Shown piece after piece: positions 1-22,622 of a DNA stretch of 64,000 bases. Under the pieces are notes generated by a model. That model made no database searches. It was not told where the DNA came from and worked only from the letters and a program-made list of their open reading frames with translations. The position numbers and the translations under genes are program-made. Each line of letters begins with the position of its first letter. Positions within the stretch are counted from its first letter, which is position 1. This DNA comes from Obrimoposthia wandeli (lineage: Eukaryota): contig CDROCS010000121.1 of NCBI GenBank assembly GCA_977020255.1, positions 1-64,000 on the forward strand, written 5' to 3'.

Positions 1-837
1 TTGCTACTATTGCAGCTTTTGGGTTTCAACTTTGGCCAGTAGAACTGTGCGATTATGAATCAGTTGCTTTTATTAAGTCTCTTATTGTTTTCCTGGTTTA
101 TTAATTTCAAATTCCATTATTGCAATTACAGAGATTACACAAATATCATTGCAAGAAATCAAAAAAAAAGAAAGGAAGTTATAAGTTAAGAAAAAAGAAT
201 GCCAATTATTGCTTTAATTATTGTATTTTAAATCCATATGCAATATATCTAAATATTTTAGCTTCTAGCAGTACTTTTGATAGTGTGTATTTTATTTTAT
301 TCAAACATTAGAGCAATTAGCAGGTGCTACAAATCTAACTCTTATGTTTTTAAATATTCGTAGAGATAGTAAAAAGAGCATAGTTAAAATATAAACTCTA
401 TATAAGTCTTCTTATATGGGTTTTAATAAATAACTTTCTCATTAGTGGTTTTGTAGAGTGTTAAAACTATTTTACAATCAAACTATCATCTGGCAATAGA
501 AAAAAGGACTTAAAATCTGTATAAATGTTTTCCTCAACCTCTTGAGCAGTTTTACTAATGAAAAGCTTCTTCCAAAAGAGTTAGATTTTGAACATACTCC
601 AAAAGTACAGGTTATTGAACTTTTTACAGCCATATAAATAAATATTCTTTTACTATTAATATGTAAGAAAGTTTTGTATGCCCCAAAGGTCAAAAAATAG
701 CCATTAAATTTGTTAATTCAAAATATTATCATAATGTCTATTCCCATAAATACTCTTATTTTCCTACTATTTCTCAGAAGTAGGAGAGAAATCAAAGAAG
801 GAGATTATTAAGGACCATTTCCTATTTTCATTAACAC

Positions 838-879
838 CACATAAAACACCTACTAAAGTATTATATAAAACTATATAAT
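838..879 (+). promoter_or_regulatory. Shared regulon box plus -10 element upstream of hemH
   Basis: CACA-TAAA-A-CAC-CTAC-TAA at 838-856; TATAAT at 874-879, 20 nt after CTAC, the same geometry as seven other promoters. Confidence 0.65.
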
Positions 880-900: not shown

Positions 901-1810
901 ATGAAAAAAAACAATTGTGTTGATGAACATGGGTAGTCCTAATAATTTAGGCAGAAGTTGATGTTTTTAAAAAATATGTTTAATGACAAATATATAATTG
1001 GAGCTCACAACCAATAAGAGCAATGATAAATTTGGCTTATCTCCGAAGAGAAGTAGACTCAAAAGCTACACCATTATAATAGTTTTGTTAGGTGGGATTT
1101 CTGTGTGGAGTCATACAAAACAACGATTAATAAGAAAACTAGAAAAAGTAGATGCAGATGTATTTCAGATTGCAGATATACTCACTCCATTTATACAAAT
1201 AAAATAGTCTCAAAATTAAAATATTATGATGAGATATACACTTCCTATGTATCCACATTATTCAAGTACAACAACAAAGTCATCTATTGAAGATTTTATG
1301 GATATGCTAAGATCTTAGCAGGTAGATAAAAGGTAAAAACTATAGATGATTATTATGATGATAAGTTGTATAATAAGTAATGATAGAAGAATAAAGAATC
1401 TTTAAATGGGTAAGATATTAAAAATTTACCTTAATATTTTCTGGACGCTAACACCTCAAAAAGTTGTAGATAAAGGTGATTTATATCAAAAACATATATT
1501 ATCAAATGTAAAAAGTTGCAAAAGAGTTAAAAAGCAGAGTGCATTTAAAAATATTAAATTGCTGCGTATCAGTAAGATTGGGACCATTAGGAGTGGATTA
1601 GACCATGTTAAAGATAAGTTGGCAAGTTGTTAGAGACAATAAAGTTATTATCTATCCAGCTTCATTTACTGTGGATAACTCAGAAACACAAGGTGAATTG
1701 GATATGAGTATAGAAGTGGCAGATGAATTGGTTTGAGAGGATTGAGTCATAAAGCTCAAATAATCATCCTTGTTTTTTAGCGTGTTTAAAAGTTTATATA
1801 AAAAAGATAG
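901..1810 (+). pseudogene. hemH: Ferrochelatase, multiply frameshifted (real decay or sequencing error)
   Basis: Fragments across frames read IVLMNMGSPNN, PMYPHYSSTTTKSSIEDF, PQKVVDKGDLYQKH, AYQSKIGP, FTVDNSET, all ferrochelatase motifs. Confidence 0.8.
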
Positions 1811-1812
1811 AT

Positions 1813-2781
1813 ATGATTATGAAAATCGGTGTATCAACGTGCACATTAGGAAATATGTGTCGTTATGATGGTGGGGGAGCAAAAGATAGATTTGTAGTAG
1901 ATATACTTTCAAATTATTTTTGACTTATTGGTTGCACTGTCCAAGAAGAGCCTGTCTTTGGAACACAAGAGATACTATACGGCAGGTAGAGTTGATGAAA
2001 GATTCGTGTTCATATTGGTAAAGTGGAGAAGATGTAACTGATGCCTTGCAAAACTCTTCAAATTTATTTGCACAAAAAGCAAAAAGTGATGGACTTTGTG
2101 GTTTTTGTCTTAAAATCAAAAATCTCCTACATGTGGAATGGAGAGAGTCAAAAAGTATATCAAGAAAAAAATTCACATGAATGAAAAAAAAAGTATAGGA
2201 CTTTTTGCAAAGACACTACGAGAGAGTTATATCCTTATTTACCTATTGAAGAAGAAGGAAGACTTAATGACCCATGGCTAAAAGAGAATTTTTTTGATGC
2301 AAGTATTTGCATATAAAAACTATTTGATTTTTAGAAACAAAACCATTAGTGAAACATCTTGTAGAGTTTCACACAAACTATAAAGTATCTTATTTATGCG
2401 AAATCACAAACGAGTTATAAAGAGTTGGGAAAAATAGTTGCAAATCAAGATAAAAAAAAAGATTTACAAAGTTATCTTAGATGAATATGCTGCAGGATTT
2501 TAAAAGCTATAACTTTAAAAAGTTCTATAAATAAAACATATAATGTACTTCTTCATATCTTTGGGTATTTTTAAAAGATTTAACTAAAGAGGAAAAAGAG
2601 TTTATTTGCTTAACTGCTATTAATGAATATAAATCTGGTATCATTCCACTTATTGCAGTGACAAAATACTAAATCTTTACGTAATAAGGTTTGATGAACA
2701 ATATCTAAAAACACAGAAGTTCCTCAATCCCTATCTTCAAAAGAATTTGCATTAAGAAGTGATACTAAGGCATATAAATAA
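1813..2781 (+). pseudogene. DUF523 (2-thiouracil desulfurase-like) / DUF1722 YbgA-family protein, frameshifted
   Basis: N-terminus MKIGVSTCTLGNMCRYDGG and C-terminus EFALRSDTKAYK; lies directly upstream of photolyase as in the ybgA-phr arrangement. Confidence 0.75.
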
Positions 2782-4135
2782 TGAAACAAATACTTTGGTT
2801 TAGGAGAGATTTGCGAATAGATGATAATGCTATATTATCAAATGCAAGTAATGAAGTCTTTCCGATATTTATTTTTGATAAAATATACTCAATAATTTAC
2901 CAAAATGATAAACGAGTAACTTTTATATATCAAAATGTTTTAAAGCTGAAAAAAGATCTTAAAAGTATAGGTCTTGATTTGGCTATATTTTTTGATTACC
3001 CTATCAATGTATTTGAAAAAATTACAGGATGATTTTGATGAAGTATTATGCTCTTGTGATTTTGACAATTATGCAATAAAAAGAGATAAAGATGATAGAG
3101 TCTATTTTATCAGTGAAACGATTTTATGATAGTTTTCTTATCCATCTAATGATGGATTAAAAGTTGATGAAACTCCTTATAAAGCTTTTTACCCCTTTTA
3201 TAAAAATCTTAAAGTTTTATAGCAAAGTGATAGTATACAGGAGTATGAAAAGAAATCAAAATCTAAAACTCGCTCGTAATAACTATAATAATACAATTTC
3301 ATTAGATTCTTTAGGATTTGAAAGACAAAAGATAGAATCATTTTAGATAAAAATCCATTTGAACTATTGGCTGAATTTAAAGAAAAGATGAGTAAATATC
3401 AAGAAGATAGAGATTATTTTTATAAAAGATGCTACTTCAAAGTTATCTGATTCCTTTACGATTTGGAATAATATCACCAAAACAAGTTTTTAATATTGTT
3501 AAACAGTATAGTGAGGAGAATTTACATCAGAGAACTTTTTGGAGAGAATTTATAACTATATTTTATACTTTTTCCCTAAAAGTGAATCTATGATAATTTT
3601 AAAGATAAAAGTATTACTTGGAATCAAAATGAAGACTATTTTAAGCATGGTCTACTGGAAATACTGGTGTACCAATTATAGATGCAGCTGAGACATCTCC
3701 CAATAATACAGGACAAATGCACAATCATCTTCGTATGGTTGCTTCTTTTTTTTACAAAAAATGACTATTTTACTACCCTGGCAATGGGGAGAAAAATATT
3801 TTGCTTTAAAACTTCTTGATTATGAAGCATCCTCAAATATTGGTTCATGGCAATGGAGTGCAAGTGACAGGGCAGATAGTGTTCCTTATTTTAGAGTATT
3901 TAATCCATACACACAAAGTGCAAAGTTTGATAAAGAGGGTGTCTTTATCAAATCAATTTTGACAGAATTAAAAGAAATTGAGCCAAAACTGTTCCATAAA
4001 GAAAATGCTGTACAAACAAATTTATTTATAAATTATCCAAAAGCTATAGTTGATATTAAAAAATCAAGAGAAGATGCAATAGATATCTTTAAAGGACAAA
4101 ATAACTATACTAAACTACTATTAAATATTATATAA
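2781..4135 (+). pseudogene. phrB: Deoxyribodipyrimidine photolyase / cryptochrome, frameshifted
   Basis: Starts LWFRRDLRIDDN; later fragments [60 protein letters not shown]. Confidence 0.85.
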
Positions 4136-4156
4136 TTAATAAAAATGAGGATACTT

Positions 4157-5571
4157 ATGCAAACTTTAGATTTAGCTGTAATTGGTAGCGGTATAGGTGG
4201 AAGTTTAATATCTGCTCTGAATATTGATAAAAATATTATTCTTTTTGAAAAAAGACAAAATCTTGGTGGATGTGCGAGCATTTAAAAGATATGGAAATTA
4301 TTATAATACAGGTGCAACTACTCTTGTAGGATATGAAGATAATCATATACTTAAAAAACAGTTTGATGAAATAGGAATAAAGCCAAATATAACAAAATCT
4401 GATATTGCAATTAGAATAATTCAAAATAATAAAACACTTGATAGAGTTAAAAATTTAGAAGAATTTATAAGTATTATTAATAAAATTTATCCAAATAAAA
4501 ACAATGAAATTTTGGAAAAAAATACAACAAATAGATGAAAAATTTGGCAATTAAAAAAATATATTATGCTAAATATTCTTTGCAGAAATATATGAAAACT
4601 CTTTCCTTTTTAAGTGAACTATTTACCACTTTTAAATTTGATATACTCAAAAGTGCAGATGGTTTTATAAAAGAAACTTTAGGAAATATTCCAACAGAAT
4701 ATCAAAACTTCATCGATGCACAACTTCTCATTACTATACAAAGTAAATCAAAAGGTATCTCTCTTTGCTGTCATTAGCATTAGGCCTTTCTTATCCTTTT
4801 CATGATGTTTATGTCAATAATGGAATGGGAAGTTTAATTGAGGAGATAATTAAAGATGTTGAAGTAAAAAGAAATGAGCAAATAAATAAGATAATTAAAG
4901 ATGGTCAAAACTGGATAGTTCGAAGTGATAAGGATGAATATAAAACTAAGAAAATAGTTCTAAATTCTTCTATTTATGAAACAAGTCATCTTTTGATGAT
5001 ATCAATATAAAAAATACTATGATTCTTTTTCTTTTAGTGATCAAAGTGCTTTTGTTGTTTATCTTACTATTGATACTGATATAGATTTTTAGAACATTAT
5101 CAGTTTATATATGATGAACTTTTACCAAACTGTATTTCAAATTCTTTTTTTTTGTTTCATTTAGCAAAAAGGTGATAAGTTACTATCAAGAATAATACTT
5201 TAAGTGTAACTATTTCTACACATAGCAAAGCAACAGTCTGGAAAGACTTAACAAAAGAGGATTATGAATATCAAAAAAATAGTACACAAGATTACATAGT
5301 GGCGAAATTCTTAGAGTATTTTGATACAATCAAAAAAGAAAATATAACAAAATATTTTAGCTCAACATCAAATACATTTAGTAGGTATATCGGAAGATAT
5401 AATTGTGGTGGTAAAGCAATAGGATTTAATAATATTCATCAATTGCCTAGCTGTAACACACCATTTAGTGGATTGTATAATGTTGGTGATACTATATTTG
5501 CAGGTCAAGGCTGGCCTGGTGTTGCTGTAGGAGTTGATGTATTGCAAAAGGAACTAAATGGAATCAGTTGA
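4157..5571 (+). pseudogene. Phytoene-desaturase-like FAD oxidoreductase (CrtD/CrtI superfamily), frameshifted
   Basis: MQTLDLAVIGSGIGG Rossmann motif, LGGCA..FKRYGNYYNTGATTLVG, C-terminal GLYNVGDTIFAGQGWPGVAVG. Confidence 0.7.
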
Positions 5572-6536
5572 GCTGAAAATATCAAATCGTGATTGGTTAT
5601 ATATTTCTATAATAGGTACATTATTTGGGTTTTTTATATCTGTATTTTTTTACTTTTTACATGAAACGTTTCGTGATGTGTCAACTGTATTATTTGGAAC
5701 TTGTAGTGCATTTTTTATCACACTATTTTCTTCAATATTTATATCTGTATCTAATAAATATATTCTGCCCAATCTTAATGAAAAATTTTGGTATATAATA
5801 AGTTTTTTATTTTCCTTTTTAAGTGGATCTCTGGGTTTTTTATTTACTTATTCTTTATTTTATATAATTGAAACTAAGATTACCAATATTATTGAACCAT
5901 ATAGTTTATATCTAACATTAACTATTGGTTCATTAACTTTTCTTATAGGACTGATTCTTCATCAATTCATCTCTATGAAATATAAAAATGAATCTATTAA
6001 AAATGAGATACTCAATAGTAAAATTAAAACTTTAGAAAATGAACTTAATCCTCATTTCTTATTTAATGCATTAAACTCAATGAGTGAATTAGTATATATA
6101 TAGATCCTAAAAAGCTGAAGAGTCTATTTTAAATCTATCAAAATTTCTAAGAAATGCAATCAAAATAGATAGTTTAATAAGTATAAATAATGAGCTGGAA
6201 ATGGTGCAAACATATGTAGATATTGAAAATATACGTTTTGACGATAAAATAAAACTACATATATCAAATGCTCATACTATTTATAGTCAAATACCAAAGT
6301 TCTCTATTCAATTACTTGTTGAAAATGCGATTAAACATGGCTATGAAAATAAAGAATTAAATATATTTATAGAAATAAAGCAAGAAATTACAGTATATAA
6401 TGATGGTAAGATAACAAAAAACTTAAAATTTGGTACAGGATTATCTAATTTAAATAATAGATTAAATCTCCTAAATATAGGGAAATTAAAATTTATTGAT
6501 GATAAAAAAATGAAATTTATAATAGAGGTAAAGTAA
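5558..6536 (+). CDS. LytS/YehU-family membrane sensor histidine kinase; one frameshift near 6100 joins ORFs 5558-6103 and 6201-6536
   Basis: About five TM helices, then ELNPHFLFNALNS (His_kinase), IQLLVENAIKHG and GTGLSNL HATPase motifs; adjacent LytTR regulator. Confidence 0.85.
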
Positions 6537-7250
6537 ATGAAAATATTAGTTGTAGATGATGAAAGACTTGCAAGTTCGAGGATGACACGAATTTTAAATG
6601 AACTGGGTTATGATAATATTACTGTTTTTAATGATAGTACAAAAGCAGTTATCAATATAACTAGAAATAAATATGATTTAGTATTTTTGGATATTCAAAT
6701 GCCTAACATTACAGGACTTGAATTGGCTAATATGATATTAGAAATTGAACCAAAAACATTTATTATATTTCAAACTGCTTATGAGGAGTTTGCTCTTGAT
6801 GCCTTTAAAGTTGGCGGAGTTGATTATATTTTAAAACCAACTTCTAAAGAAAACGTATTACAAAGTATAAACAAAGTAAAAAGATATATGGAAGTAGTAC
6901 CAGAAGTTCAAACAAAAAAGATTATTGGAAAAAGAGGTGATAAAATTTATCTCATTGAACTTGAGGATATATTTTATATTAAAGCAGATTTAGATGAAAT
7001 TATTATTAGAATAAAAGATGCCGATGTATATGTACGAAAAAAAATAGGAAATATGGCAGAGCTTTTAAGTAATCAAAACTTTTTTAGAATTCACCGTTCT
7101 ATTATAATCAATATTGATAAAGTAAAATCGATGCAAAGTGTTGAACAATCAAAATTACAAATATCGTTTACTGATATAGATGATATAGTTACCAGCTCAA
7201 AAGATGGGGCAAAAGATTTTAGAGACTATTTAGAGAGAAGTAGTTTATAA
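6537..7250 (+). CDS. LytTR-family response regulator
   Basis: REC domain (VVDDE, FLDIQMP, TAY, KP) plus LytTR C-terminus FFRIHRSIIIN; intact and abutting the kinase. Confidence 0.92.
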   Translation: MKILVVDDERLASSRMTRILNELGYDNITVFNDSTKAVINITRNKYDLVFLDIQMPNITGLELANMILEIEPKTFIIFQTAYEEFALDAFKVGGVDYILKPTSKENVLQSINKVKRYMEVVPEVQTKKIIGKRGDKIYLIELEDIFYIKADLDEIIIRIKDADVYVRKKIGNMAELLSNQNFFRIHRSIIINIDKVKSMQSVEQSKLQISFTDIDDIVTSSKDGAKDFRDYLERSSL

Positions 7251-7284
7251 AATCTTTAAAGATTAAACTTAAATGGTATTAAGT

Positions 7285-7815
7285 TTAGTCTTTAATTATA
7301 GTAATCACAAGCTCCCCTACAGTAAATCCAAATTTTTTCATTTTTGAATGATTTAAAATCACTCCATCTTCTTGTAAATGAAGCCAATCTTTTACATTTA
7401 TATCTATTGTAGAATCATTGTACGGTACTGTCATTGTATAATCAATCATCACAGTGTTTCCATTAGCAATCATTTGTGCTTCACCTACAATATCACCTGC
7501 TGTTCCTATAAAATTTTTATCACCTGTTGGAGTTAATGTCCAAACTCTAGTTTGTTTTTCACCATTATCATACACAAATTTTTCATCTAATGTTCCAACA
7601 CCATTTTTATCCCAAGAACCTACTAAATGACCTTTGAAAGTTTTGATAATTTTTCCACTTCTATCTTTTACCATTCCATAGGCTGTTAACTTTCCATTAA
7701 AATATTTTTGAGGAATAAATTCTGGTCCTTTATTTGTAAAGTCTTCTATTTGCATTGTTGAACATCCTGTAAAAATTAAAAGTATTGTACTTAGAAATAA
7801 AGTTTGCAGTCTCAT
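7285..7815 (-). CDS. DUF3833-family lipoprotein
   Basis: Lipobox FTGC; YFNGKLTAYGMVKDRSG, DVKDWLHLQ pattern; last gene of the ufa-like operon. Confidence 0.8.
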   Translation of the reverse strand: MRLQTLFLSTILLIFTGCSTMQIEDFTNKGPEFIPQKYFNGKLTAYGMVKDRSGKIIKTFKGHLVGSWDKNGVGTLDEKFVYDNGEKQTRVWTLTPTGDKNFIGTAGDIVGEAQMIANGNTVMIDYTMTVPYNDSTIDINVKDWLHLQEDGVILNHSKMKKFGFTVGELVITIIKD

Positions 7816-9038
7816 GCTACAAGTCCTTCATTTAAATCCATATTTTGATATCTAGTAAATGCAATTTGCACAAGATTTATATTTCTAGTTAAAAAGGCAG
7901 CTTCACAATAACAAAGATACATTTTCCACATTCTGATGAAGTATTCATCAAAGCCTAATTTTTTTACTTCTTCTAATTTTTGATTAAAGTTTTCATGCCA
8001 GATATTGAGTGTTTTTGCATAATGTTCTGTAAATTCTTCCATATGTAAAAGGTTTAGTTTTGTGTTTTTTGTAGTTACATCTAATATTTTCCCAACACTT
8101 GGAAGATGCCCTCCTGGAAAGATATACTTTTGAATAAAATCAGTTCCCTTACAATATGAACTATATCTTTGATCTGGCATTGTAATAACTTGCATTAGGA
8201 GTATACCACTTGGTTTTAACAGTGATTCACATTTTTTAAAGAATACATCAAAATATTCACGACCTACTGCTTCAAACATTTCAACAGCAATAACAGCATC
8301 AAATTCACCTTCCATATCTCTATAATCTTTTAGTATTACATCAACAGATTCTTGAATATTATGCTCTTTAAATCTACCTTCACAAAGCTTTTTTTGCTCT
8401 TTGGATAGTGTTAAAGTTGTAACTTCACAACCATACTCTTTTACTAAATGTATAGCCATGGCTCCCCAACCTGAACCAATTTCTAATACTTTTGAACCTT
8501 TTTTAAGGTTTAGTTTTTTTGCAAGTAAATCTATTTTTCTTTTTTGTGCATCAAATAAAGGTTCATCTGCTGTTTCAAATACTGCTGAAGAATACATCAT
8601 TGTATCATCTAAAAATAGTTCAAAAAAATCATTTGATAAGTCATAGTGTTCTTGAATATTTTTAGCCGAACGTGTTTTTGAGTTTTTTCTCATGATATGT
8701 TTGAGTTTATTGACTATAGGAAATAAGTTATAAAGACTAAACTTTTTTTCATCTTCGCTTTTTGTTTGTAAAGCATCCGAGTTAATAAGTCCTAATGTAA
8801 TCAATGCTGTTAAATCATCACATTCAAAATCTTTATCCATATAACTTTCAGCAAATCCAATATCTCCAAAAAAAGTAAGTCTTCTAAATAAATCTGCATT
8901 ATTTAGAACTATTTTTGCTTTTGGTTCTTGATTATTTCCATATATTTTTACTTTACTATCACAAAATGTAACTTGTAGTGTTCCTTTTGTGATTTTTGAA
9001 AAATACTTATCTCCTAAATTATTCCAAAAAGATTTCAT
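7812..9038 (-). CDS. cfa: Cyclopropane-fatty-acyl-phospholipid synthase family SAM methyltransferase (UfaM-like)
   Basis: HYDLSNDFFELFLDDTMMYSSA, VLEIGSGWG, FIQKYIFPGG, RMWKMYLCYCEAAF. Confidence 0.9.
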   Translation of the reverse strand: MKSFWNNLGDKYFSKITKGTLQVTFCDSKVKIYGNNQEPKAKIVLNNADLFRRLTFFGDIGFAESYMDKDFECDDLTALITLGLINSDALQTKSEDEKKFSLYNLFPIVNKLKHIMRKNSKTRSAKNIQEHYDLSNDFFELFLDDTMMYSSAVFETADEPLFDAQKRKIDLLAKKLNLKKGSKVLEIGSGWGAMAIHLVKEYGCEVTTLTLSKEQKKLCEGRFKEHNIQESVDVILKDYRDMEGEFDAVIAVEMFEAVGREYFDVFFKKCESLLKPSGILLMQVITMPDQRYSSYCKGTDFIQKYIFPGGHLPSVGKILDVTTKNTKLNLLHMEEFTEHYAKTLNIWHENFNQKLEEVKKLGFDEYFIRMWKMYLCYCEAAFLTRNINLVQIAFTRYQNMDLNEGLVA

Positions 9039-9039
9039 T

Positions 9040-9780
9040 TTAAGCCCTCCTAGTTGTATCTATAGCTTCTGGTCCATTAAATTTTAGACCTTTTAATTTA
9101 AGTTTTAAACTCTGCCAGATTGTTCTTGTTACTACCCAAAATGTAAGTAATGTATGTCTTGAAAATAATGAGATAATATTTGATTCATTAAAAATAAGAC
9201 TCTCTCCTATAAAAGTTGAAGTTAATACTTTTTTATTATCTTCAATAAGATTTATTCCAATAGAAAATTTTTCATTTGTGTATATTAAGTCAAATCTATA
9301 TTCCCCATCTCTTTTAAAAAATGGAGAAACATACATATCTTTTTGAGTTTCACCTTTATAGTGTTTATTATCATTTGTTTCTAGTTTTACGTGATAGATT
9401 ATTCTTCCTCCATTATAGTTATGTACTTCCGCTAACATAGTAGATGGTTTGTCGTTTTCAAAAAGGAGTAATACACTAATAGGATTAAATACATAACCTA
9501 CAATTCTGGGTAATGTAATAAATCTCATCTTTTCTGTAGGTTTTAAATCATATTTTTTTAATAGATTTTTTATATTTTCATTAAAATGAATACCTTCACC
9601 AAAATGGTCTTTGGTATTAAATGAAAAAAGATTAAAGCTGTTTAGAGAAAAGTATTTATTATCTAATTTTTCAAGTTTTGATATATCTATATCAATCATA
9701 AAGAATTTGTATTTGAAATTATGTACTTTGGGGCTATATCTTTTATGATAAATATTCCCTTCAAAAAATTTATGACTCAT
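9040..9780 (-). CDS. DUF1365-family protein (UfaO-like)
   Basis: YHKRYSPKVHNFKY, LPRIVGYVFNPIS, AEVHN, KDMYVSPF, IWQSLKLKLKG. Confidence 0.85.
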   Translation of the reverse strand: MSHKFFEGNIYHKRYSPKVHNFKYKFFMIDIDISKLEKLDNKYFSLNSFNLFSFNTKDHFGEGIHFNENIKNLLKKYDLKPTEKMRFITLPRIVGYVFNPISVLLLFENDKPSTMLAEVHNYNGGRIIYHVKLETNDNKHYKGETQKDMYVSPFFKRDGEYRFDLIYTNEKFSIGINLIEDNKKVLTSTFIGESLIFNESNIISLFSRHTLLTFWVVTRTIWQSLKLKLKGLKFNGPEAIDTTRRA

Positions 9781-11030
9781 AACTCACATCCAAATTCTTC
9801 TGCAATTGTATTTGCACTATACAAACCATCTTCATGAAAACCATATCTCCAGTAAGCCCCTGCAAAGTAAGTGTTGTTTTTACCATTGATTAGATCTCGT
9901 TTACTTTGAGCTTCTATAGCTTTTTTATCAAACTGAGGGTGTTCATAGCTTATATTTTCTATTACTTCATCTAATTTTTCTGTTTCATTTAATGAAACAA
10001 AATACTCTTTTTTACTCTTTAAATTTTGTAAACGATTTATCCAATATGACAATGTAACATTTTGGCTTTCTCCATTTGTTTTATAATTCCAAGCAGCGTA
10101 AATTTTTTTATCTGGATATAAAGCTTTTTTATCTGTATGTAAAACTGCTTTATTCTCTTTGTATTCAAAACATGAAAGAATTCGAAGTTCATCTACTGTT
10201 GGTTCATCTATTAAATTAAGTGCATCTGGTGCGTGCATAGCAAAGATAACTTTGTCATAAACTGATTGTGAATTATCTTTATGAACTAAGATTATTTTAT
10301 TCTGTTCTCTTAATACATTTATTACATCAGAATTTTTAAATATTTTTCCAGATATTTCTTTTGATATTTTTTCAACATAGTTGATAGAACCACCACTAAC
10401 TGTAAGCCATTGGTGATGAGTATCAACACCTAATAAGCCATGATTTTTAAAAAAATGTAAAAATGAACGTGCAGGAAAATCACTCATCTTATCACTAGGT
10501 GTTGACCAAATCGATGAACCCATTGGAATAATATATCTATCTTTAAAATATTTTGAATAGTCTTTTAAATACTCACCTAATGATAAATCTAAATCACTAT
10601 GATTGTTTTTTAAATCTTCATTTGCTTTTTTATTAAACTTTAATACATCAAAAATCATTTTATTATGTGAGTAAGAAAAGATATTTTTCTTTTGAAAATA
10701 CATACCTTTTAATGATTCACCATTATAAGCCAGGTTGCTTTTTTGATCCCAAAATGCAAAACTCATATCACTATTTTCAATTTTTACATCTAATTGCTCA
10801 AATAGTTTGGTAAGTAATGGATAAGTAGGGTGGTTAAATACTAAAAACCCTGTATCCACACCAAATTTCTTACCATCTTCTGTTACTTGTGAAGTTCTCG
10901 CATGACCACCTAATCTATTATCTTTTTCATAGAGATCAACATCGTGTTTTTTGCTTAATAAATATGCACTTCCTAGTCCACTTATTCCGGCTCCTAAAAC
11001 TGCTATTTTATATTTTTTTTCTTGATTCAT
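9777..11030 (-). CDS. FAD-dependent oxidoreductase, amine-oxidase family (UfaD-like fatty-acid desaturase)
   Basis: KIAVLGAGISGL, RLGGHA, VDTGFLVFNHPTYP, GAYWRYGFHEDG; directly upstream of DUF1365 and cfa. Confidence 0.85.
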   Translation of the reverse strand: MNQEKKYKIAVLGAGISGLGSAYLLSKKHDVDLYEKDNRLGGHARTSQVTEDGKKFGVDTGFLVFNHPTYPLLTKLFEQLDVKIENSDMSFAFWDQKSNLAYNGESLKGMYFQKKNIFSYSHNKMIFDVLKFNKKANEDLKNNHSDLDLSLGEYLKDYSKYFKDRYIIPMGSSIWSTPSDKMSDFPARSFLHFFKNHGLLGVDTHHQWLTVSGGSINYVEKISKEISGKIFKNSDVINVLREQNKIILVHKDNSQSVYDKVIFAMHAPDALNLIDEPTVDELRILSCFEYKENKAVLHTDKKALYPDKKIYAAWNYKTNGESQNVTLSYWINRLQNLKSKKEYFVSLNETEKLDEVIENISYEHPQFDKKAIEAQSKRDLINGKNNTYFAGAYWRYGFHEDGLYSANTIAEEFGCEL

Positions 11031-11082
11031 TTGTATCGTCCTTGCGAATCTTGTGGCGTGTATATAAATCTTTTGTACTGTT

Positions 11083-11124
11083 ATTTTATGATTATATAAA
11101 GAGTTTTTGTAGGAATAAAATGTT
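11083..11124 (-). promoter_or_regulatory. Shared regulon box plus -10 upstream of the ufa-like operon
   Basis: Minus strand AACA-TTTT-A-TTC-CTAC-AAA (11124-11106); TAAAAT at 11088-11083, 20 nt after CTAC. Confidence 0.7.
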
Positions 11125-11144
11125 GGTTGATAAGATTTTTATAA

Positions 11145-12404
11145 CTAAAATATTAAATCTTTATATTTATTGATAAAAAACAGAGCAATCAACTTCAAAC
11201 ATACAGGAAAGAGCCCATATAAAAGAGATAGTACAAGTAAAGAATCCAAGGTCGGGTTACTTACATCAAAATCAAAAAGTCCAAGTATTACGAAACTAAA
11301 AGCTACAGCAAAAGCTAATGATAATTTTGTAATCATTGTCCATATACCAAATAATAAACCAGAAATATTACTTTTATAATCTTTAGATTTTTGAACTAAA
11401 TCACTTTGTATTGCTGTAGGAAGTGCCATATCAGCTCCTAAAGATAATCCAGAAACTAAACTGATTATTATAAATGCGTTCAAATTTCCCGCTTCTAAAA
11501 AAGGTACAAATGAAAAAGCAAATGAAGCTAAAATTATTGAAGTGATCCAAGTCTTTTTTTTACCAATTTTTCCTGACAAAAAGTCCCAAAATGGAAGAGC
11601 TACAATACCAGAGAAAAAATATAATATTAAAATCATTCCTCCCGAACTCTTTTCTTGTATTACTAATTCGATAAAAAGTAAAAAAAGAGTCGCGGGAAGT
11701 GCATTTGCAAGATTATTAAAAAAGTATCCTATTTGTAAATACTTTAAGTCACTCAAATTTGTATAAATATCTTTTATATCTTTTAGAGTATATTTTTCTA
11801 CTGCTACAATATTTTTGATTTTGATTGTTTTTAAAGTGATAAAAAACAGAGGAATAAATAGAATTAAAAATGTGATGTATAATACTTGTAAAGTTTGTTC
11901 AAAGTTTTCTGAAACTTTATAAATATAAGGGATAATTAAAGCTATTAAAATACCAATAATTGTAAACAGTTCTCTTGAACTATTTAAAAGTGTTTTATCT
12001 TCATATTTTTGACTTATTTCACTACTCCATGTTAAATAAGGAATATTGATCATACTCCATCCAATATAAACTAAAATAGAAAAAGTTAAAAGCCAAAGTT
12101 TTGGAAACTCTAAATTTGGATTTATAAGTGCATAAAAACTGCAAATTAAAATAATAGAACCTAAAATCATAATGGGTTTTCTACTATTGAAATACTCAAT
12201 ACTCTTATCACTTAAATATCCAAAATATGGATCTGTAAAGACATCAGTTAATCTTGCTAAAAAGATGATCAAACCTACCGTAGCTATTTCGACACCTACT
12301 GTTGTTGCATAAAAAGTTGGTAAATATATATAAAGTGGTAAGCCTACAATTGCTAAAGGAATTGCTAGGAGACTGTAGTAAAATACTAATTGTTTTGATA
12401 GCAT
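11145..12404 (-). CDS. MFS/GPH-family transporter
   Basis: About 12 TM helices, ARLTDVFTDPYFGYLSD, SGLLFGIWTMITKLSLA. Confidence 0.85.
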   Translation of the reverse strand: MLSKQLVFYYSLLAIPLAIVGLPLYIYLPTFYATTVGVEIATVGLIIFLARLTDVFTDPYFGYLSDKSIEYFNSRKPIMILGSIILICSFYALINPNLEFPKLWLLTFSILVYIGWSMINIPYLTWSSEISQKYEDKTLLNSSRELFTIIGILIALIIPYIYKVSENFEQTLQVLYITFLILFIPLFFITLKTIKIKNIVAVEKYTLKDIKDIYTNLSDLKYLQIGYFFNNLANALPATLFLLFIELVIQEKSSGGMILILYFFSGIVALPFWDFLSGKIGKKKTWITSIILASFAFSFVPFLEAGNLNAFIIISLVSGLSLGADMALPTAIQSDLVQKSKDYKSNISGLLFGIWTMITKLSLAFAVAFSFVILGLFDFDVSNPTLDSLLVLSLLYGLFPVCLKLIALFFINKYKDLIF

Positions 12405-12406
12405 GA

Positions 12407-12844
12407 TTAAGAGTTTATCTTACTTTTTATAAATTTCATAAAAAAAGAAAGAATAGGAATTTTCTCGTATAAATTACTAGATGAATCCCAATAATCAATA
12501 TGAGATACTACTCTATTTTCTTTATTAAATTCAACTCTACTAACGCCTTCAAAAGATTCATTTTTATTACTACCTTTAAATGAAAAATGAAAATTCCATT
12601 TTAAATAGGCAATATTATGTTGTTCCACTATTTCTGTAACTATAAAACTTGGCTTATCAAGTTTTATATACATATCTTCAAATATTTTATATAACTTATT
12701 AATTCCAATAATATCATGAAAAGGATCTTTAAATCGTACCTCATTATCAAATATTTTTTCATACTCTTTTATGCTCGTGTTTTTATCAATATTTTCAAAA
12801 AATTGTGCATATATCTTTGCATTAGTATTATTTATGGTACTCAT
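12407..12844 (-). CDS. SnoaL/NTF2-like protein
   Basis: VRFKDPFHDIIG, GVSRVEF, SHIDYWD, LYEKIP. Confidence 0.85.
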   Translation of the reverse strand: MSTINNTNAKIYAQFFENIDKNTSIKEYEKIFDNEVRFKDPFHDIIGINKLYKIFEDMYIKLDKPSFIVTEIVEQHNIAYLKWNFHFSFKGSNKNESFEGVSRVEFNKENRVVSHIDYWDSSSNLYEKIPILSFFMKFIKSKINS

Positions 12845-13602
12845 GGTAGCATCTTTTTTGTAAGAGATAAAGAAATTTTATATGGCATCATTTTTAGTAG
12901 ACTTAAAAATATTCGTAATCCAAAAGGAAATCTAATTTCAAAAGCTGATGATTTTTCCATACCTTTAAGTATTTTTTCTGCGGTATATTTAGCTTCCATG
13001 AGTTGAGGCATTTTAAATGTATTTTTTGCTGTTAATTTTGTTTTTACAAATCCATGATTTATGATTTGTAATTTTATATTTGAAACTTCTAATTCCGGAT
13101 GAATAGACTCTGCAAGATTAACAAGTGCAGCTTTAGGAGCAGAGTATCCTCCTCCTTGGGGTAGTCCAAAGTAGGATGAAAGACTAGCGTTCCAAACCCA
13201 ATGCCCTTTTTTTGAATCTTTAAAATAAGGAAAAATTTCAGTCATTAATCGTATTACACCAAGATAATTTACATCATTCATCTGTTCAAATTTCACGCTA
13301 TCCCATGAATTGATACTCATTACTTCATATGCTCCTGCATTATAAAACCAAATATCTAAGCCATTGTATATATTCCATGCAATTTTAACTTTTTTAGCTA
13401 TATCACTTACTAAAGATACATCAAGATCGATTAGGCTTAATTCTTTTGGGTAATGTTCTTTAAGACTTTGTAAGTCTATGCTATTTGATGTATTTCTTGA
13501 GCTTGTGATAACAAGATAATTATTATGTAAACATAATTTTACTAACTCTAATCCAATTCCAGAACTTCCACCAACAATCCAAATTCTTTTTTTAGGTTCC
13601 AT
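12841..13602 (-). CDS. SDR-family oxidoreductase; start reassigned to the ATG at 13602
   Basis: IWIVGGSSGIG, NAG, YSAPKAA; RBS-like AAAGG precedes the MEPKK start. Confidence 0.88.
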   Translation of the reverse strand: MEPKKRIWIVGGSSGIGLELVKLCLHNNYLVITSSRNTSNSIDLQSLKEHYPKELSLIDLDVSLVSDIAKKVKIAWNIYNGLDIWFYNAGAYEVMSINSWDSVKFEQMNDVNYLGVIRLMTEIFPYFKDSKKGHWVWNASLSSYFGLPQGGGYSAPKAALVNLAESIHPELEVSNIKLQIINHGFVKTKLTAKNTFKMPQLMEAKYTAEKILKGMEKSSAFEIRFPFGLRIFLSLLKMMPYKISLSLTKKMLP

Positions 13603-13623
13603 ATTGAAGCCTTTTTTGTTTAT

Positions 13624-13664
13624 ATTATAGAGTTTTTGCATATCTTTCGTAGAGTTAATATGTC
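13624..13664 (-). promoter_or_regulatory. Shared regulon box plus -10 upstream of SDR-SnoaL-MFS
   Basis: Minus strand GACA-TATT-A-ACT-CTAC-GAA (13664-13646); TATAAT at 13629-13624, 19 nt after CTAC. Confidence 0.65.
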
Positions 13665-13698
13665 ACTTGATATATTTATTCTATCTTTATTGCCAACA

Positions 13699-13740
13699 AA
13701 CAAAATACCCCTACAAAATAATTTTAATTAACTATAGAAT
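13699..13740 (+). promoter_or_regulatory. Shared regulon box plus -10 upstream of the renalase-like gene
   Basis: AACA-AAAT-A-CCC-CTAC-AAA (13699-13717); TAGAAT at 13735-13740, 20 nt after CTAC. Confidence 0.65.
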
Positions 13741-14677: not shown

Positions 14678-15560
14678 GCTTGAAAATACTTTTGTAATAG
14701 GAGATGTCCATGGCTGTTACTATACCCTGCTAAAGCTAATAAGACAATTACCAGAAGATGCAGAAATTATCTTTGTTGGGGATCTTTGTGATAAGGGTGA
14801 ATTTTCTAAAGATGTTATAGAATTTGTTATAGAAAATAACTACCTTTGTGTTAAAGGAAATCATGAAAATTTATTTGAAAAACACATAAAAGATGTAATA
14901 GACAATAACAAAGATACACTTTGGAATAGTGATGAAAAATATGGTGGCTTACAATGTATTCGAAGTTATAAAGGAAACTTTTCGCTTATAAATAAACATC
15001 TAGAGTGGATAAAAAAGCTACCGATGTATTTAGAAATAGACAAGTACTTTATAACACATGGATTTGCTCTAGAGTATTATGAATATAGAAATAATAAAGA
15101 TTATTATAATGATATATTACTCTCAAGACTGTATCCAGATACTATAGAGTTAGAATCTAAAGAAAATATTATAAATGTATTTGGACATTGTATATTCCCT
15201 GAAGTCCAAATAGGCAAAAAATATATTTGTCTTGATACAGGCTGTGCATATGGTGGTAAACTCTCTGCATTACAACTTGGAACAAATAAAATATTTGTAG
15301 AACCTATGGATGAAAATGATTCAAATTATCACATTAAAGAATTAAAACTTAAAGACATTAATCTGGATTTAGATGGCTTAGAAGAGATTCGAAATATTAC
15401 ACTAAAAGATGACTGTAAATATTGTGCGTTTGATATTATATCCAATGAAGTACTAGCGTATATTGTTAAAAAATACCCAAATATAGCAAAAACTGAAATG
15501 CAATATATGAAAGAAAAAGCCATTATTTTCCCAAAACAAATAAATAAATTTTTTAACTAA
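14658..15560 (+). CDS. Metallophosphoesterase (ApaH/PrpA-like)
   Basis: GDVHG, VGDLCDKG, KGNHE, THG, GH, LDTGCAYGGKLSA motifs. Confidence 0.88.
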   Translation: MSMSLNKLENTFVIGDVHGCYYTLLKLIRQLPEDAEIIFVGDLCDKGEFSKDVIEFVIENNYLCVKGNHENLFEKHIKDVIDNNKDTLWNSDEKYGGLQCIRSYKGNFSLINKHLEWIKKLPMYLEIDKYFITHGFALEYYEYRNNKDYYNDILLSRLYPDTIELESKENIINVFGHCIFPEVQIGKKYICLDTGCAYGGKLSALQLGTNKIFVEPMDENDSNYHIKELKLKDINLDLDGLEEIRNITLKDDCKYCAFDIISNEVLAYIVKKYPNIAKTEMQYMKEKAIIFPKQINKFFN

Positions 15561-15600
15561 CATTTTATTACTATTAAAAAATATAACACTTTGATAAAAT
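15559..15600 (+). promoter_or_regulatory. Shared regulon box plus extended -10 upstream of the EAL gene
   Basis: AACA-TTTT-A-TTA-CTAT-TAA (15559-15577); TGA-TAAAAT with hexamer at 15595-15600, 20 nt after CTAT. Confidence 0.65.
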
Positions 15601-15622: not shown

Positions 15623-16681
15623 ATGTCATGTACAAAATGTAGTGAGAAGTTTTACCTAAAAAAACAACCAGGAATAATTTTCTTTATAAGTGAATTTGAA
15701 GAACTAACTAATAAGACGACTCAATTTCTTGAAAAATTATCATTGAAAGTTGAAAACTTAAATGGGCTTTTAAGTATAACTGTAGATAATACAGAAAATT
15801 TCTTTTGTGAAAATTTAGATGCATTTAAATCAACATACAATGAACTAGAATTAAATGATATAAAAGTATTTATAACTGATGAAAAATCAACTTTTACTTT
15901 TAATTCGATACTAAGTGCAAAACCACTTCAAAGATATATAAATCTTTTTGACGATAAAGAATTCTTCGATATAGTGAATAATGAATCACTAACCTCACAT
16001 TTTCAACCAATTATAGATATGAGAGATAATACAATCTATGGTTATGAAACATTAGTTCGTGGTGTTAAAGAGGATGGAAGTTTAATGTATCCAGATGAGC
16101 TTTTTTCTAAGTCAAAGAGAAATGATCTAAACTTCAAACTTGATAGACTATGTCGTGAGAGTTCACTAAAAACAGCAGCTACAAAAAAAGTGCATCAAAA
16201 AGTTTTTATTAACTTTATTCCAACTTCTATTTATGATCCAGAGTTTTGTTTAGCTTCGACTGAAAAATGGGCAAAACAGTTAGAGTTTGACCCATCTCAA
16301 ATAGTATTTGAAGTTGTTGAAACAGAGCTGGTAAAAGATCAAAAACATCTGAAGAATATATTGGAATTTTATAGAAGCAAGGGATATAAAATTGCACTTG
16401 ATGATGTAGGTGAAGGATATTCAAGTCTTAATATGTTAATAGAACTTAAGCCAGATATTATAAAAATTGATAGAAATATTATAGATGGGATAGATAAAAA
16501 TGAGCTAAAACAATCAGTTTATAAAGCATTGTTCAACTTAGCACGAGAGCATGATATAGAGGTTTTAGCTGAAGGAGTTGAAACAGCTTACGAGCTTGAA
16601 ACTATCAAGTCAATAGGGGTTGATTATGTGCAGGGGTATTATTTCGCAAAACCTGCATCTGAACCAATACGAAAGATATAA
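15623..16681 (+). CDS. EAL-domain c-di-GMP phosphodiesterase with an N-terminal CxxC extension
   Basis: FQPI, YETLVRG, FINF, FEVVE, ALDDVGEGYSSL, KID, AEGVE, QGYYF; starts MSCTKC. Confidence 0.9.
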   Translation: MSCTKCSEKFYLKKQPGIIFFISEFEELTNKTTQFLEKLSLKVENLNGLLSITVDNTENFFCENLDAFKSTYNELELNDIKVFITDEKSTFTFNSILSAKPLQRYINLFDDKEFFDIVNNESLTSHFQPIIDMRDNTIYGYETLVRGVKEDGSLMYPDELFSKSKRNDLNFKLDRLCRESSLKTAATKKVHQKVFINFIPTSIYDPEFCLASTEKWAKQLEFDPSQIVFEVVETELVKDQKHLKNILEFYRSKGYKIALDDVGEGYSSLNMLIELKPDIIKIDRNIIDGIDKNELKQSVYKALFNLAREHDIEVLAEGVETAYELETIKSIGVDYVQGYYFAKPASEPIRKI

Positions 16682-16692
16682 AATGTTTAACT

Positions 16693-16734
16693 AACATTTT
16701 AGCACTACAAACAATATAAACTTTGTATTATAAT
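16693..16734 (+). promoter_or_regulatory. Shared regulon box plus -10 upstream of the hypothetical-TIGR03643-pdxH operon
   Basis: AACA-TTTT-A-GCA-CTAC-AAA (16693-16711); TATAAT at 16729-16734, 20 nt after CTAC. Confidence 0.72.
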
Positions 16735-17123: not shown

Positions 17124-17408
17124 ATGAACTACATAAGAAAAGAAAAACTAAAACCTATAAAAAAAAGAGATTTATCTTTTGAAGAATTTGATGATAATCG
17201 GCTTATTGAGATGGCTTGGCAAGACAGAATGCCATTTGATATTATATATAAACAATATGGTCTTACTGAAAACCAAGTAAAAAACAAAATGAGAAAACTT
17301 ATAAGCAAAAAAGCTTATAATAGATGGAGAAAAAGGGTTCACGGAAGAGTTACAAAACATATTAAAAAATGTGACCATAAACCAGATAGGTTTCAAGGTC
17401 CTTGGTAA
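17124..17408 (+). CDS. TIGR03643 (DUF2805)-family protein
   Basis: RLIEMAWQDRMPFDII..QYGLTENQV..MR......YNRWRKRV signature. Confidence 0.85.
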   Translation: MNYIRKEKLKPIKKRDLSFEEFDDNRLIEMAWQDRMPFDIIYKQYGLTENQVKNKMRKLISKKAYNRWRKRVHGRVTKHIKKCDHKPDRFQGPW

Positions 17409-18061: not shown

Positions 18062-18073
18062 GTACGATTAACC

Positions 18074-18115
18074 GACATTTCACAACTACTAAATAAAATT
18101 CTTATATAGTAAACT
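18074..18115 (+). promoter_or_regulatory. Shared regulon box plus -10 upstream of phasin-ubiB
   Basis: GACA-TTTC-A-CAA-CTAC-TAA (18074-18092); TAAACT at 18110-18115, 20 nt after CTAC. Confidence 0.65.
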
Positions 18116-19971: not shown

Positions 19972-19991
19972 AATTACAAATCTTATGAAAT

Positions 19992-20033
19992 GTCATAAAA
20001 CAACTATGAATTAATACTTTCTTTATATATAAT
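19992..20033 (+). promoter_or_regulatory. Shared regulon box (weaker match) plus -10 upstream of the lipocalin operon
   Basis: GTCA-TAAA-A-CAA-CTAT-GAA (19992-20010); TATAAT at 20028-20033, 20 nt after CTAT. Confidence 0.55.
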
Positions 20034-21409: not shown

Positions 21410-22622
21410 ATGAATAACTACATCCCACACCTGAGTAAATTTGATCCAGATTCAAATGGACATTTCGGAATATTCGGAGGACGTTATGTTCCTGAAACAC
21501 TTATGCCTATATTGTTAGAACTTGAAGAAAGTTATAATAAATATAGATTTGATGAACAGTTTTGGGAAGAGAGTGAAATCTATCTTTAAAAAGAGGAGTA
21601 TGGCAAGAGTAGACCCAATCCTCTTTGTTTCGCTCCAAATATTAGTAAAGAAATAGGGCTAAGGTATATTTAAAAAGAGAAAGATTTAAGGAAAAAATCA
21701 CATACTGGTGCTCATAAAATAAACAATGTTATAGCACAAGGTGTAACCAAAAAAGACTTGGTAAAACAAAAGTTATTTAGAAACAGGGTGCAGGACAACA
21801 TGGTGTTGCAACAGCTACTGTTTGTGCTCTTATGCGGTTTTAGAGTGTACTATTTTTATGGGTGCAAAAGGCAACGTCAAGAACTTAATGTTTTTAGAAT
21901 GAAACTACTAGGTGCAAAGGTTGTATCAGTTGAATCAGGAAGTAGATCTTTAAAAGATGCAATGAATGATGCAGAATTCAGTTTTTGGGTTACAAATGCT
22001 AGAGATACTTTTTATATCATTGGGACGTTGCTAGGTCTCATCGCAGCTCTATGATGTTAAAGAGATTTTCAAGCTATCATTGGTTGGGAAACAAGACAAC
22101 AAATTCTTGAAAAGAAAATGAGCTTCCTGATAAAGTTATCGCTTGGTGGTGAATTGAGATCTATGCTATTGGTATGTTTTCACATTTTTTAGAGGATGTT
22201 GATGTAGAGTGTATTGGAATAGAAGCTGGTGGTCATGGAATCGAAACTGATATGCATGGTTGTAGTTTGAAAAAAGGAAGTCCGGGAGTATTACATGGAC
22301 AATGTTCTTATTTATTGCAAGATGAAGATGGACAAGTACAAGAAGCACATTCTATATCTGCTGGATTAGATTATCCAGGAATTGGACCTGAACATAGTTT
22401 CCATAATGATTTAGGTAGGAAATGATAATCACTGATGATGAAGATGGATGCATTTGTATGGTTAAGCCAAAAAGAGGGTATCATACCAGCTTTGATCAGA
22501 ATCATGCCATAGCATATTTGAAAAAAGCTAAAGAAACATTACAAGGTAAAATAGTAGTTATCAATCTATCTGGTCGTGGTGATAAAGATATACAACAAGC
22601 AAATGAGATTTTTAAATTTTAG
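21410..22622 (+). pseudogene. trpB: Tryptophan synthase beta chain, heavily frameshifted
   Basis: [74 protein letters not shown]. Confidence 0.9.

Follow-up and report, generated by a model that had tools for sequence, protein, structure and literature searches.

We analysed a stretch of 64,000 nucleotides (referred to as the window; positions 1 to 64,000 of the forward strand of contig CDROCS010000121.1, here C121, from the assembly GCA_977020255.1 of Obrimoposthia wandeli), in which a photoprotection operon ends with the genes of a membrane histidine kinase and of a response regulator with a LytTR domain. This pair is probably an undescribed switch for a light-damage protection response. 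In the full model the pair would govern a set of operons preceded by a common promoter box of 28 bp, the regulator being the protein that binds the box; from the sequence comparisons presented here we give this model a probability of about 0.55. The source contig has a G+C content of about 27%, its nearest relatives are Arcobacteraceae, and many of the 6912 contigs that make up the 1.35-Gb assembly are bacterial. The host of the locus is a marine Arcobacter-like bacterium, and in this organism the intact operon comprises, in this order, hemH, rudS (ybgA), phr, a crtD-like flavoprotein gene, the kinase gene and the regulator gene (Table 1).

A sequence-only reading of the window had described the regulator as intact, and the domain searches agree. 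Response_reg (PF00072) matched residues 3-111 with an E-value of 7e-25, and LytTR (PF04397) matched residues 135-232 with an E-value of 6e-19, covering profile positions 1-97 of 98. By eye, the receiver residues are complete in the translation (DD at 7-8, the acceptor Asp in FLDIQMP, Thr in QTAY and Lys in ILKP). The kinase is represented in the window by two open reading frames (ORFs), 5558-6103 and 6201-6536, which are the halves of a single PF06580 (His_kinase) protein. An intact copy of 325 amino acids lies on another contig of the assembly, C4416 (L090:2292-3269, minus strand; His_kinase E-value 5e-22), and the protein analyses were carried out with this copy and with the regulator of the window. 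The ATPase motifs were recognised by eye in the second half (N box ENAIKHG, G1 YNDG, G2 GTGLSN), and Pfam HATPase_c was not among the kinase matches. Hydropathy analysis indicated four transmembrane helices (12-37, 43-65, 77-99 and 115-140), running straight into the H box, instead of the five or so previously counted; the loops between them are short, and there is no extracytoplasmic domain. At E-values up to 0.1 no Pfam match to the 5TMR_LYT membrane domain or to a GAF domain was found in the kinase. Because of the four helices and the lack of 5TMR_LYT and GAF, the kinase belongs to the LytS/YehU family by its catalytic core only; its automatic name in the atlas is 'putative sensor histidine kinase YehU'. 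On the favoured reading, kinase and regulator are a working two-component system and not a pseudogene. When the exact regulator protein was looked up in public assemblies, no record was found.

The proposed translational linkage of the pair behind the 'desaturase' gene was confirmed, the stop of the latter overlapping the kinase start (5571 versus 5558) and the regulator ATG at 6537 directly abutting the kinase stop at 6534-6536. The regulator had also been singled out as the only transcription factor at 0.8-22.6 kb, and indeed no other recognisable Pfam DNA-binding domain is present among the ORFs of this region. Neither a sigma nor an anti-sigma domain was found in any ORF between 0.8 and 28 kb, no MerR fusion with a B12-binding domain (CarH/LitR type) was found in the window, and an Rfam scan of the window returned RNase P RNA only. 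The 'desaturase' matched the NCBIfam CrtD model with 128 bits, the cut-off being 550, and is by this measure a distant CrtD/carotenoid-isomerase-like flavoprotein. RudS, a fusion of TudS and DUF1722, acts as a desulfidase on tRNA 4-thiouridine and is typically encoded in light-responsive operons (PMC11417400).

The box was found by reading the intergenic regions, followed by a weight-matrix scan; generic repeat finding over 1-24 kb did not reveal it. Its 28-bp consensus, from a matrix refined on relatives, is TTATaAACTrACAt-N8-CTACwAAAA. In the window seven sites reached at least 12 bits, versus 0.45 expected in shuffled sequences, which bears out the existence of the box as reported before. 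All seven lie at 11-20 kb and point toward the first gene of an operon, and together with a damaged site at 829 the box precedes eight operons of the window. The intact sibling of the damaged site, on C4416, scores 22.4 bits and lies 47 nucleotides from the hemH ATG.

The geometry of the box was counted over 83 distinct sites, 72 of which are accompanied by a TATAAT match of at least 5/6. The CTAC end lies 19-20 nucleotides from the TATAAT-like hexamer in 59 of these 72, and 43-57 nucleotides separate the CTAC end from the start codon. Placing TATAAT at -12 to -7 puts the box at about -57 to -29 of a sigma-70-type promoter, over the -35 position. The first ATG of the short-chain dehydrogenase/reductase (SDR) ORF (window 12841-13641, minus strand), at 13641, falls within the box and promoter; on the geometry of the box we therefore moved the start of this gene to the ATG at 13602 (MEPKKRIWIV...), the likely start, which agrees with the orthologs. 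A looser form of the box pattern was tried on single genomes and was too noisy for counting the size of the regulon.

Gene order around the pair was compared in 39 Campylobacterota loci with an ortholog of the regulator (46-76% identity), which belong to Arcobacteraceae, Sulfurovaceae, Sulfurospirillaceae and Sulfurimonadaceae. The kinase gene is present in 38 of them, the flavoprotein gene in 33, phr and rudS in 26 each, an SRPBCC gene in 25 and hemH in 16. The trio of crtD-like flavoprotein, kinase and regulator genes lies beside phr, rudS, hemH or the SRPBCC gene in about 40 Campylobacterota loci, and its tight linkage is conserved: a flavoprotein stop that overlaps the start of the kinase gene is seen in 25 of 33 loci, and the corresponding overlap between kinase stop and regulator start in 26 of 35. 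The box accompanies these genes. It precedes the pair's own operon in 21 of the 26 loci in which the operon head is visible, weaker look-alikes being found there in the remaining five; at least 26 genomes have a strict box that starts within 40 nucleotides of the regulator stop codon and drives the next operon; and the box is retained with regulators down to 46% identity (L044-L047).

Some loci depart from this layout. In five Aliarcobacter loci (L026, L029, L030, L032 and L038) about 1.3 kb are inserted between the flavoprotein and kinase genes, breaking the conserved overlap. A metagenome-assembled genome (MAG) labelled Thermodesulfovibrio carries, in one operon, the box followed by genes for a methyltransferase, a FAD (flavin adenine dinucleotide) oxidoreductase, the kinase and the regulator (L050:543-4944), and in an Aquificales-labelled MAG (L049) a photolyase gene is divergent from regulator-ybgA, with no full kinase. 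The binning of these MAGs is unverified, and the two loci may represent spread across phyla.

Co-occurrence was counted in 184 Arcobacteraceae species genomes, as raw counts that ignore shared ancestry. The regulator is present as a single copy in 123 of them and phr in 133; both occur together in 117, the regulator alone in 6, phr alone in 16 and neither in 45, giving an odds ratio of 55. For the box we used a strict pattern of 23 nucleotides with a sensitivity of 54% and about 0.5 chance hits per genome, the reversed pattern serving as control. Genomes with the regulator yielded 1.35 strict boxes per genome versus 0.42 for the control, and genomes lacking it yielded 0.62 versus 0.46, which is background. 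Thirteen phr loci were then taken from genomes without a regulator match. Two are contig fragments, and no box was detected upstream of phr in 10 of the 11 informative loci, where the best scores ranged from -16 to +7 bits; over all the regulator-less phr loci apart from that of the genome G137, the range is -16 to +9 bits. The association of the pair with the box and with photoprotection genes, suggested by the sequence-only reading as a check, thus holds in about 40 loci of at least four families, and 117 of the 123 genomes with the regulator have phr. The regulator is the best candidate for the box binder because of the enrichment of boxes in genomes that have it, the boxless state of regulator-less phr loci and the synteny. 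The earlier proposal that this pair, and not RpoE-ChrR or CarH/LitR, runs the box regulon is accordingly backed by comparative evidence (the synteny, the box at the head of the pair's own operon and an enrichment seen only where the regulator is present), and we infer from it that the regulator binds the box.

Several observations weigh against a role of the pair as reader of the box. The strict pattern yields only about one excess site per genome. One complete Arcobacteraceae genome without kinase and regulator, G137, keeps one box at rudS-phr, which is the situation that the sequence-only reading had named as speaking against its proposal. The sister genome G002, which does bear the pair, shows an almost identical box at the phr locus, and G137 looks like a recent loss of the pair and not like a pattern. 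The geometry is also unusual. In the 83-site profile the strongest self-similarity of the box is at a 13-bp shift, and the weaker 21-bp signal comes partly from A runs; the same profile revealed no conserved second, 21-bp-phased repeat upstream of the box. The caveat raised before, that the internal repeat is of roughly 13-14 bp and not of the 21-bp period usual for LytTR sites, stands. Moreover, the promoter-proximal half of the box lies on the -35 position, which in the LytTR protein CoxC means repression. The reverse complement of the left half (TCAGTTTAT) may resemble the 9-mer consensus reported for LytTR sites, which is a lead only. The canonical LytTR operator consists of two 9-bp direct repeats 10-13 bp apart, located upstream of -35 (PMC11347149), and the box does not clearly show such geometry.

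These observations would fit a box read by some other factor, either an unrecognised regulator or an alternative sigma factor, with the pair being one more member of the regulon and controlling something else. The co-occurrence would be expected, too, if the pair only belonged to the regulon of an unseen regulator having the same distribution. Besides the non-canonical geometry and the box of G137, this explanation draws on DUF2805/TIGR03643, a small basic protein of unknown function that belongs to the regulon. In the window it is encoded at 17124-17408 (94 amino acids, very basic); 75 of the 77 genomes that have it also have the regulator, and the literature on it gives no function. DUF2805/TIGR03643 was ruled out as the hidden box binder, as about 48 of the 123 genomes with the regulator do not have it, and several of these 48 still carry boxes, including regulator-abutting sites in G052, G053 and G056; it behaves, to judge from its distribution, as a regulon member. 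The box read as an ECF (extracytoplasmic function) sigma promoter, or as two -35 hexamers, was likewise ruled out: AAC and CTAC are 13 nucleotides apart, with TATAAT fixed 19-20 nucleotides downstream, and the spacing of ECF promoters is 16-17 nucleotides. In the five relatives examined, neither ChrR-like nor B12-type regulators occur consistently: Cupin_7 matches (ChrR) were inconsistent, and B12-binding_2 (CarH/LitR) was found in ORFs of 1146-1170 amino acids, the size of MetH, in all five, with one further ORF of 365 amino acids in G006. No other transcription-factor family recurs near the 39 loci, and the box travels with the pair across families. On balance, another reader of the box is conceivable but unlikely.

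A second explanation would make the pair an ordinary nutrient- or envelope-sensing system of the LytS/BtsS type, comparable to those for pyruvate or peptide uptake or for murein hydrolase control, that stands beside photolyase genes by chance. The best NCBIfam matches of the regulator are indeed BtsR (117 bits) and LytR (109 bits), and the automatic name of the kinase points the same way. However, these matches fall far under the equivalog cut-offs of 246 and 375 bits, respectively (NF008677, NF010684), the kinase is without 5TMR_LYT and GAF, and no transporter or cidAB/lrgAB-type gene is conserved beside the pair. That the pair is linked with phr, rudS and the flavoprotein gene in about 40 loci, and that nearly all genomes with the regulator have phr, is also at odds with a chance neighbourhood, which we consider highly improbable.

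Under the favoured model, in which the pair switches the box regulon, the four-helix kinase, having no extracytoplasmic domain, would phosphorylate the receiver of the receiver-LytTR regulator. Its gene is translationally coupled to the flavoprotein gene, and kinase and regulator are the last cistrons of the photoprotection operon. The phosphorylated regulator would most likely bind the 28-bp box at about -57 to -29, and this binding would switch on the eight operons of the window and, in relatives, also the pair's own operon, which would amount to positive autoregulation. As to the sign, activation is somewhat favoured over repression. The predicted regulon includes photolyase, ferrochelatase, the tRNA 4-thiouridine desulfidase, a furan/cyclopropane fatty-acid cluster, the Blc lipocalin, an SRPBCC protein, UbiB, PNP oxidase and an EAL phosphodiesterase; in L009 the regulon content also includes glutathione peroxidase. 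The pair probably responds to light or to photo-oxidative membrane stress, since the gene set matches RpoE-ChrR and LitR targets in proteobacteria (PMC5241685, PMC7380195, PMC11417400). The narrower proposal of the sequence-only reading, detection of lipid peroxidation or photo-excited porphyrin by the kinase, is speculative. Because the kinase carries no sensory domain itself and its gene is translationally coupled to that of the flavoprotein, the flavoprotein is, speculatively, a reasonable candidate for a co-sensor. A bolder extension, which we consider doubtful, is that the trio would be a three-component photo-oxidative sensor, in which the flavoprotein would detect light, flavin/quinone redox state or oxidised membrane lipid and signal via the kinase to the regulator; it would replace RpoE-ChrR and LitR as the photoprotection master switch throughout Campylobacterota and, together with its box, would have spread to other phyla.

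The reading frames of the window required separate analysis. The genes hemH, ybgA, phr and 'desaturase', behind which the sequence-only reading had placed the regulator, are not intact in the window, where each carries 14 to 57 indel events. The kinase gene is broken near 6100, where a frameshift had been suspected and a check of the reads advised. This check was done with read contigs. The lesion is not a single frameshift, because the first frame is closed by a TAG at 6101 and the second by a TAA at 6108; compared with C4416, a TA run of the window is longer by one TA and an A run is shorter by one A, and the window also differs by an 84-nucleotide patch of mostly silent substitutions. The locus was assembled three times, with 92-93% identity, as C121:900-7250, C4416:6975-13426 (L090) and C2785:56040-62383 (L091). 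On C4416 hemH, ybgA, phr, the flavoprotein gene and the kinase gene are all intact and the regulator gene is broken, and on C2785 every gene of the locus is broken. Relative to C4416, the window shows 57 indel events in hemH (312 amino acids in the intact copy), 15 substitutions and 24 indels in ybgA, 21 substitutions and 26 indels in phr, and 2 substitutions and 14 indels in the flavoprotein gene.

The window was compared with contigs assembled from public reads, which come from two independent studies (X1 and X2). Over 6095-7290 they differ from it by 0-5 mismatches, X1 being identical there, regulator included. Over 1679-5664 each contig piece shows 19-37 substitutions and 22-51 gap letters, and at 3424, 3450, 3587 and 3772, within phr, X1 and X2 carry the indel states of C4416. 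In place of 6011-6094 they have 82 letters, and one letter is added after 6095, a net change of -1; from the lengths alone, this would correspond to the C4416 pattern and restore the kinase frame. Both lesions of the kinase gene are thus assembly errors according to C4416 and the read contigs. Further downstream, trpB (window 21410-22620) is cut into many pieces in all three frames, with the motifs HTGAHKINN, GAGQHGVATA and VINLSGRGDKD still visible, probably through the same assembly noise. An IS3-like transposase starts at about 22768, after the trpB pieces.

Alternatively, the operon including the kinase gene might be a decaying pseudogene array in this strain, of which only the regulator survives. 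There are more than 120 indel events from hemH through the flavoprotein gene, the kinase is doubly broken, and one read contig of low depth (X1 record 7, depth 3.4) has the window-type allele over 5960-6097. This contig, however, leaves the window sequence at 6097, and consequently does not support the junction. The ratio of indels to substitutions reaches 7:1 (flavoprotein gene, 14 versus 2), a value quite unlike natural decay and characteristic of errors in long reads. Furthermore, the sibling contigs break different genes, the high-depth read contigs of both studies show the intact-type states with the flanking 1.2 kb identical, and trpB is shattered in the same way. Given the ratios of indels to substitutions, the intact copy on C4416 and the read contigs, decay was rejected and is in our opinion very unlikely; for the same reasons, the frameshifts of the window are very probably an assembly artefact. 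Dense frameshift patches in this assembly are therefore to be taken as consensus errors and not as gene decay, and 'pseudogene' calls in its bacterial contigs need to be checked against sibling contigs or reads.

Table 1. Genes of the pair's operon and sites of the promoter box. Positions refer to the window, except for the last line.
Feature	Position	Strand	Remarks
Box before hemH (head of the operon ending in kinase and regulator)	829..859	+	Window copy indel-damaged: 22.5 bits with first matrix, <12 bits with refined matrix
hemH (ferrochelatase)	902..1814	+	tblastn with ortholog across two frames; Pfam Ferrochelatase on ortholog; shattered
ybgA = rudS (TudS desulfidase + DUF1722; tRNA 4-thiouridine de-modifying)	1819..2781	+	Shattered in window
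phr (class I photolyase)	2781..4135	+	Shattered in window
CrtD/carotenoid-isomerase-like FAD oxidoreductase ('desaturase')	4157..5571	+	NAD_binding_8 + Amino_oxidase; shattered in window
Membrane histidine kinase, PF06580 (LytS/YehU-type)	5558..6536	+	Broken at 6095-6113 by +TA and -A
Response regulator, receiver + LytTR domains	6537..7250	+	Intact, 237 aa
Box before amine-oxidase (UfaD-like)-DUF1365-CFA-DUF3833 operon	11103..11133	-	33.6 bits; conserved in L033-L037
Box before SDR-SnoaL-MFS operon	13643..13673	-	26.3 bits; TATAAT 19 nt downstream; ATG at 13602
Box before 304-aa FAD protein + metallophosphoesterase operon	13690..13720	+	25.7 bits
Box before EAL phosphodiesterase gene (352 aa)	15550..15580	+	24.9 bits; conserved before orthologs in L011, L012
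Box before 118-aa protein, DUF2805, PNP-oxidase operon	16684..16714	+	24.9 bits; conserved in L013, L015
Box before phasin-like gene + ABC1/UbiB kinase operon	18065..18095	+	28.1 bits; conserved in L015, L022
Box before Blc lipocalin, SRPBCC, CbiX operon	19983..20013	+	15.1 bits
Box of G137	G137:C1:2697821-2697846 (L100:6819)		High-scoring, upstream of rudS-phr

Among the box-preceded genes listed in Table 1, the EAL phosphodiesterase has an N-terminal domain of 117 amino acids (15623-15985) that starts with a CxxC motif (MSCTKCSEK...) and matches nothing in Pfam; this domain may act as a sensor and tie the regulon to cyclic di-GMP. In Poseidonibacter and related loci a lipocalin-like gene of 179 amino acids lies between the box and the amine-oxidase gene, at a place where the window (11030-11133, minus strand) has only a 79-nucleotide leader. 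The proteins of the cluster of cyclopropane-fatty-acid-synthase-like (CFA), DUF1365 and amine-oxidase genes (window 7285-13602) are 83-95% identical to those of Poseidonibacter, whereas the regulator (6537-7250) shares only 61% identity with that of Poseidonibacter and 70-76% with the regulators of another MAG clade; each half of the region may have had its own history.

In bacteria, this gene set is known to be switched by an ECF sigma/anti-sigma pair or by MerR regulators linked to B12 or LOV. If the model is correct, a LytTR regulator at the end of a phospho-relay would offer a third, independent way of controlling this regulon, and the box would be a LytTR operator of unusual geometry. Full-text literature searches linking LytTR, Arcobacter or butzleri with photolyase, or addressing the light response of Arcobacter, returned nothing relevant, and we found no publication on the response to light or photo-oxidative stress in Campylobacterota, a phylum that includes marine Arcobacteraceae and food-borne Aliarcobacter. 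Cultivable relatives with the same locus and box exist, for example Poseidonibacter lekithochrous and Halarcobacter.

By its domains the pair is of an ordinary two-component class, to which an apparently undescribed regulon and an unusual putative operator would be attached. With BtsS/BtsR (YehU/YehT) and YpdA/YpdB of Escherichia coli and LytS/LytR of Staphylococcus it shares a PF06580 kinase and a receiver-LytTR regulator encoded by adjacent, overlapping genes. It differs from them in that the kinase has four helices only and neither 5TMR_LYT nor GAF, the regulator stays far under the BtsR and LytR cut-offs, the neighbours and putative targets are photoprotection genes instead of transporters or holin-like genes, and the putative operator shows no clear repeat period of about 20-21 bp.

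The gene set itself is best known from other regulators. RpoE-ChrR of Rhodobacter sphaeroides and Vibrio cholerae responds to singlet oxygen or blue light, and its targets comprise photolyase, CFA-synthase-like and furan fatty-acid genes, the latter encoding UfaD and UfaO/DUF1365 (PMC7380195, PMC5241685). This target set resembles the genes described here, whereas the regulator is an ECF sigma/anti-sigma pair, neither member of which is encoded in the window, and the box is not of ECF geometry. Class II LitR/CarH regulators of Pseudomonas control operons with phrB and rudS (PMC11417400). LitR, in contrast to the present pair, is a one-component, adenosyl-B12-dependent repressor of the MerR family, a type of protein not encoded in the window.

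With regard to the operator, AgrA, ComE and other quorum-sensing LytTR regulators bind just upstream of promoters with a poor -35 element, activate these promoters and also control their own operons (PMC4227749). The putative site placement and the autoregulatory position are alike here. The sites of AgrA and ComE, however, are two 9-bp direct repeats 10-13 bp apart and centred near -60, whereas the present box is a single bipartite element of 28 bp reaching -35, and the kinase is not of the peptide-sensing type. The LytTR carbon monoxide sensors CoxC and RcoM come close in another respect, as the CoxC operator overlaps the -35 box and has non-canonical repeat numbers; they differ in being one-component proteins with MHYT or haem-PAS sensors, in recognising three 8-bp repeats with a spacing of 12-13 bp and in regulating cox genes.

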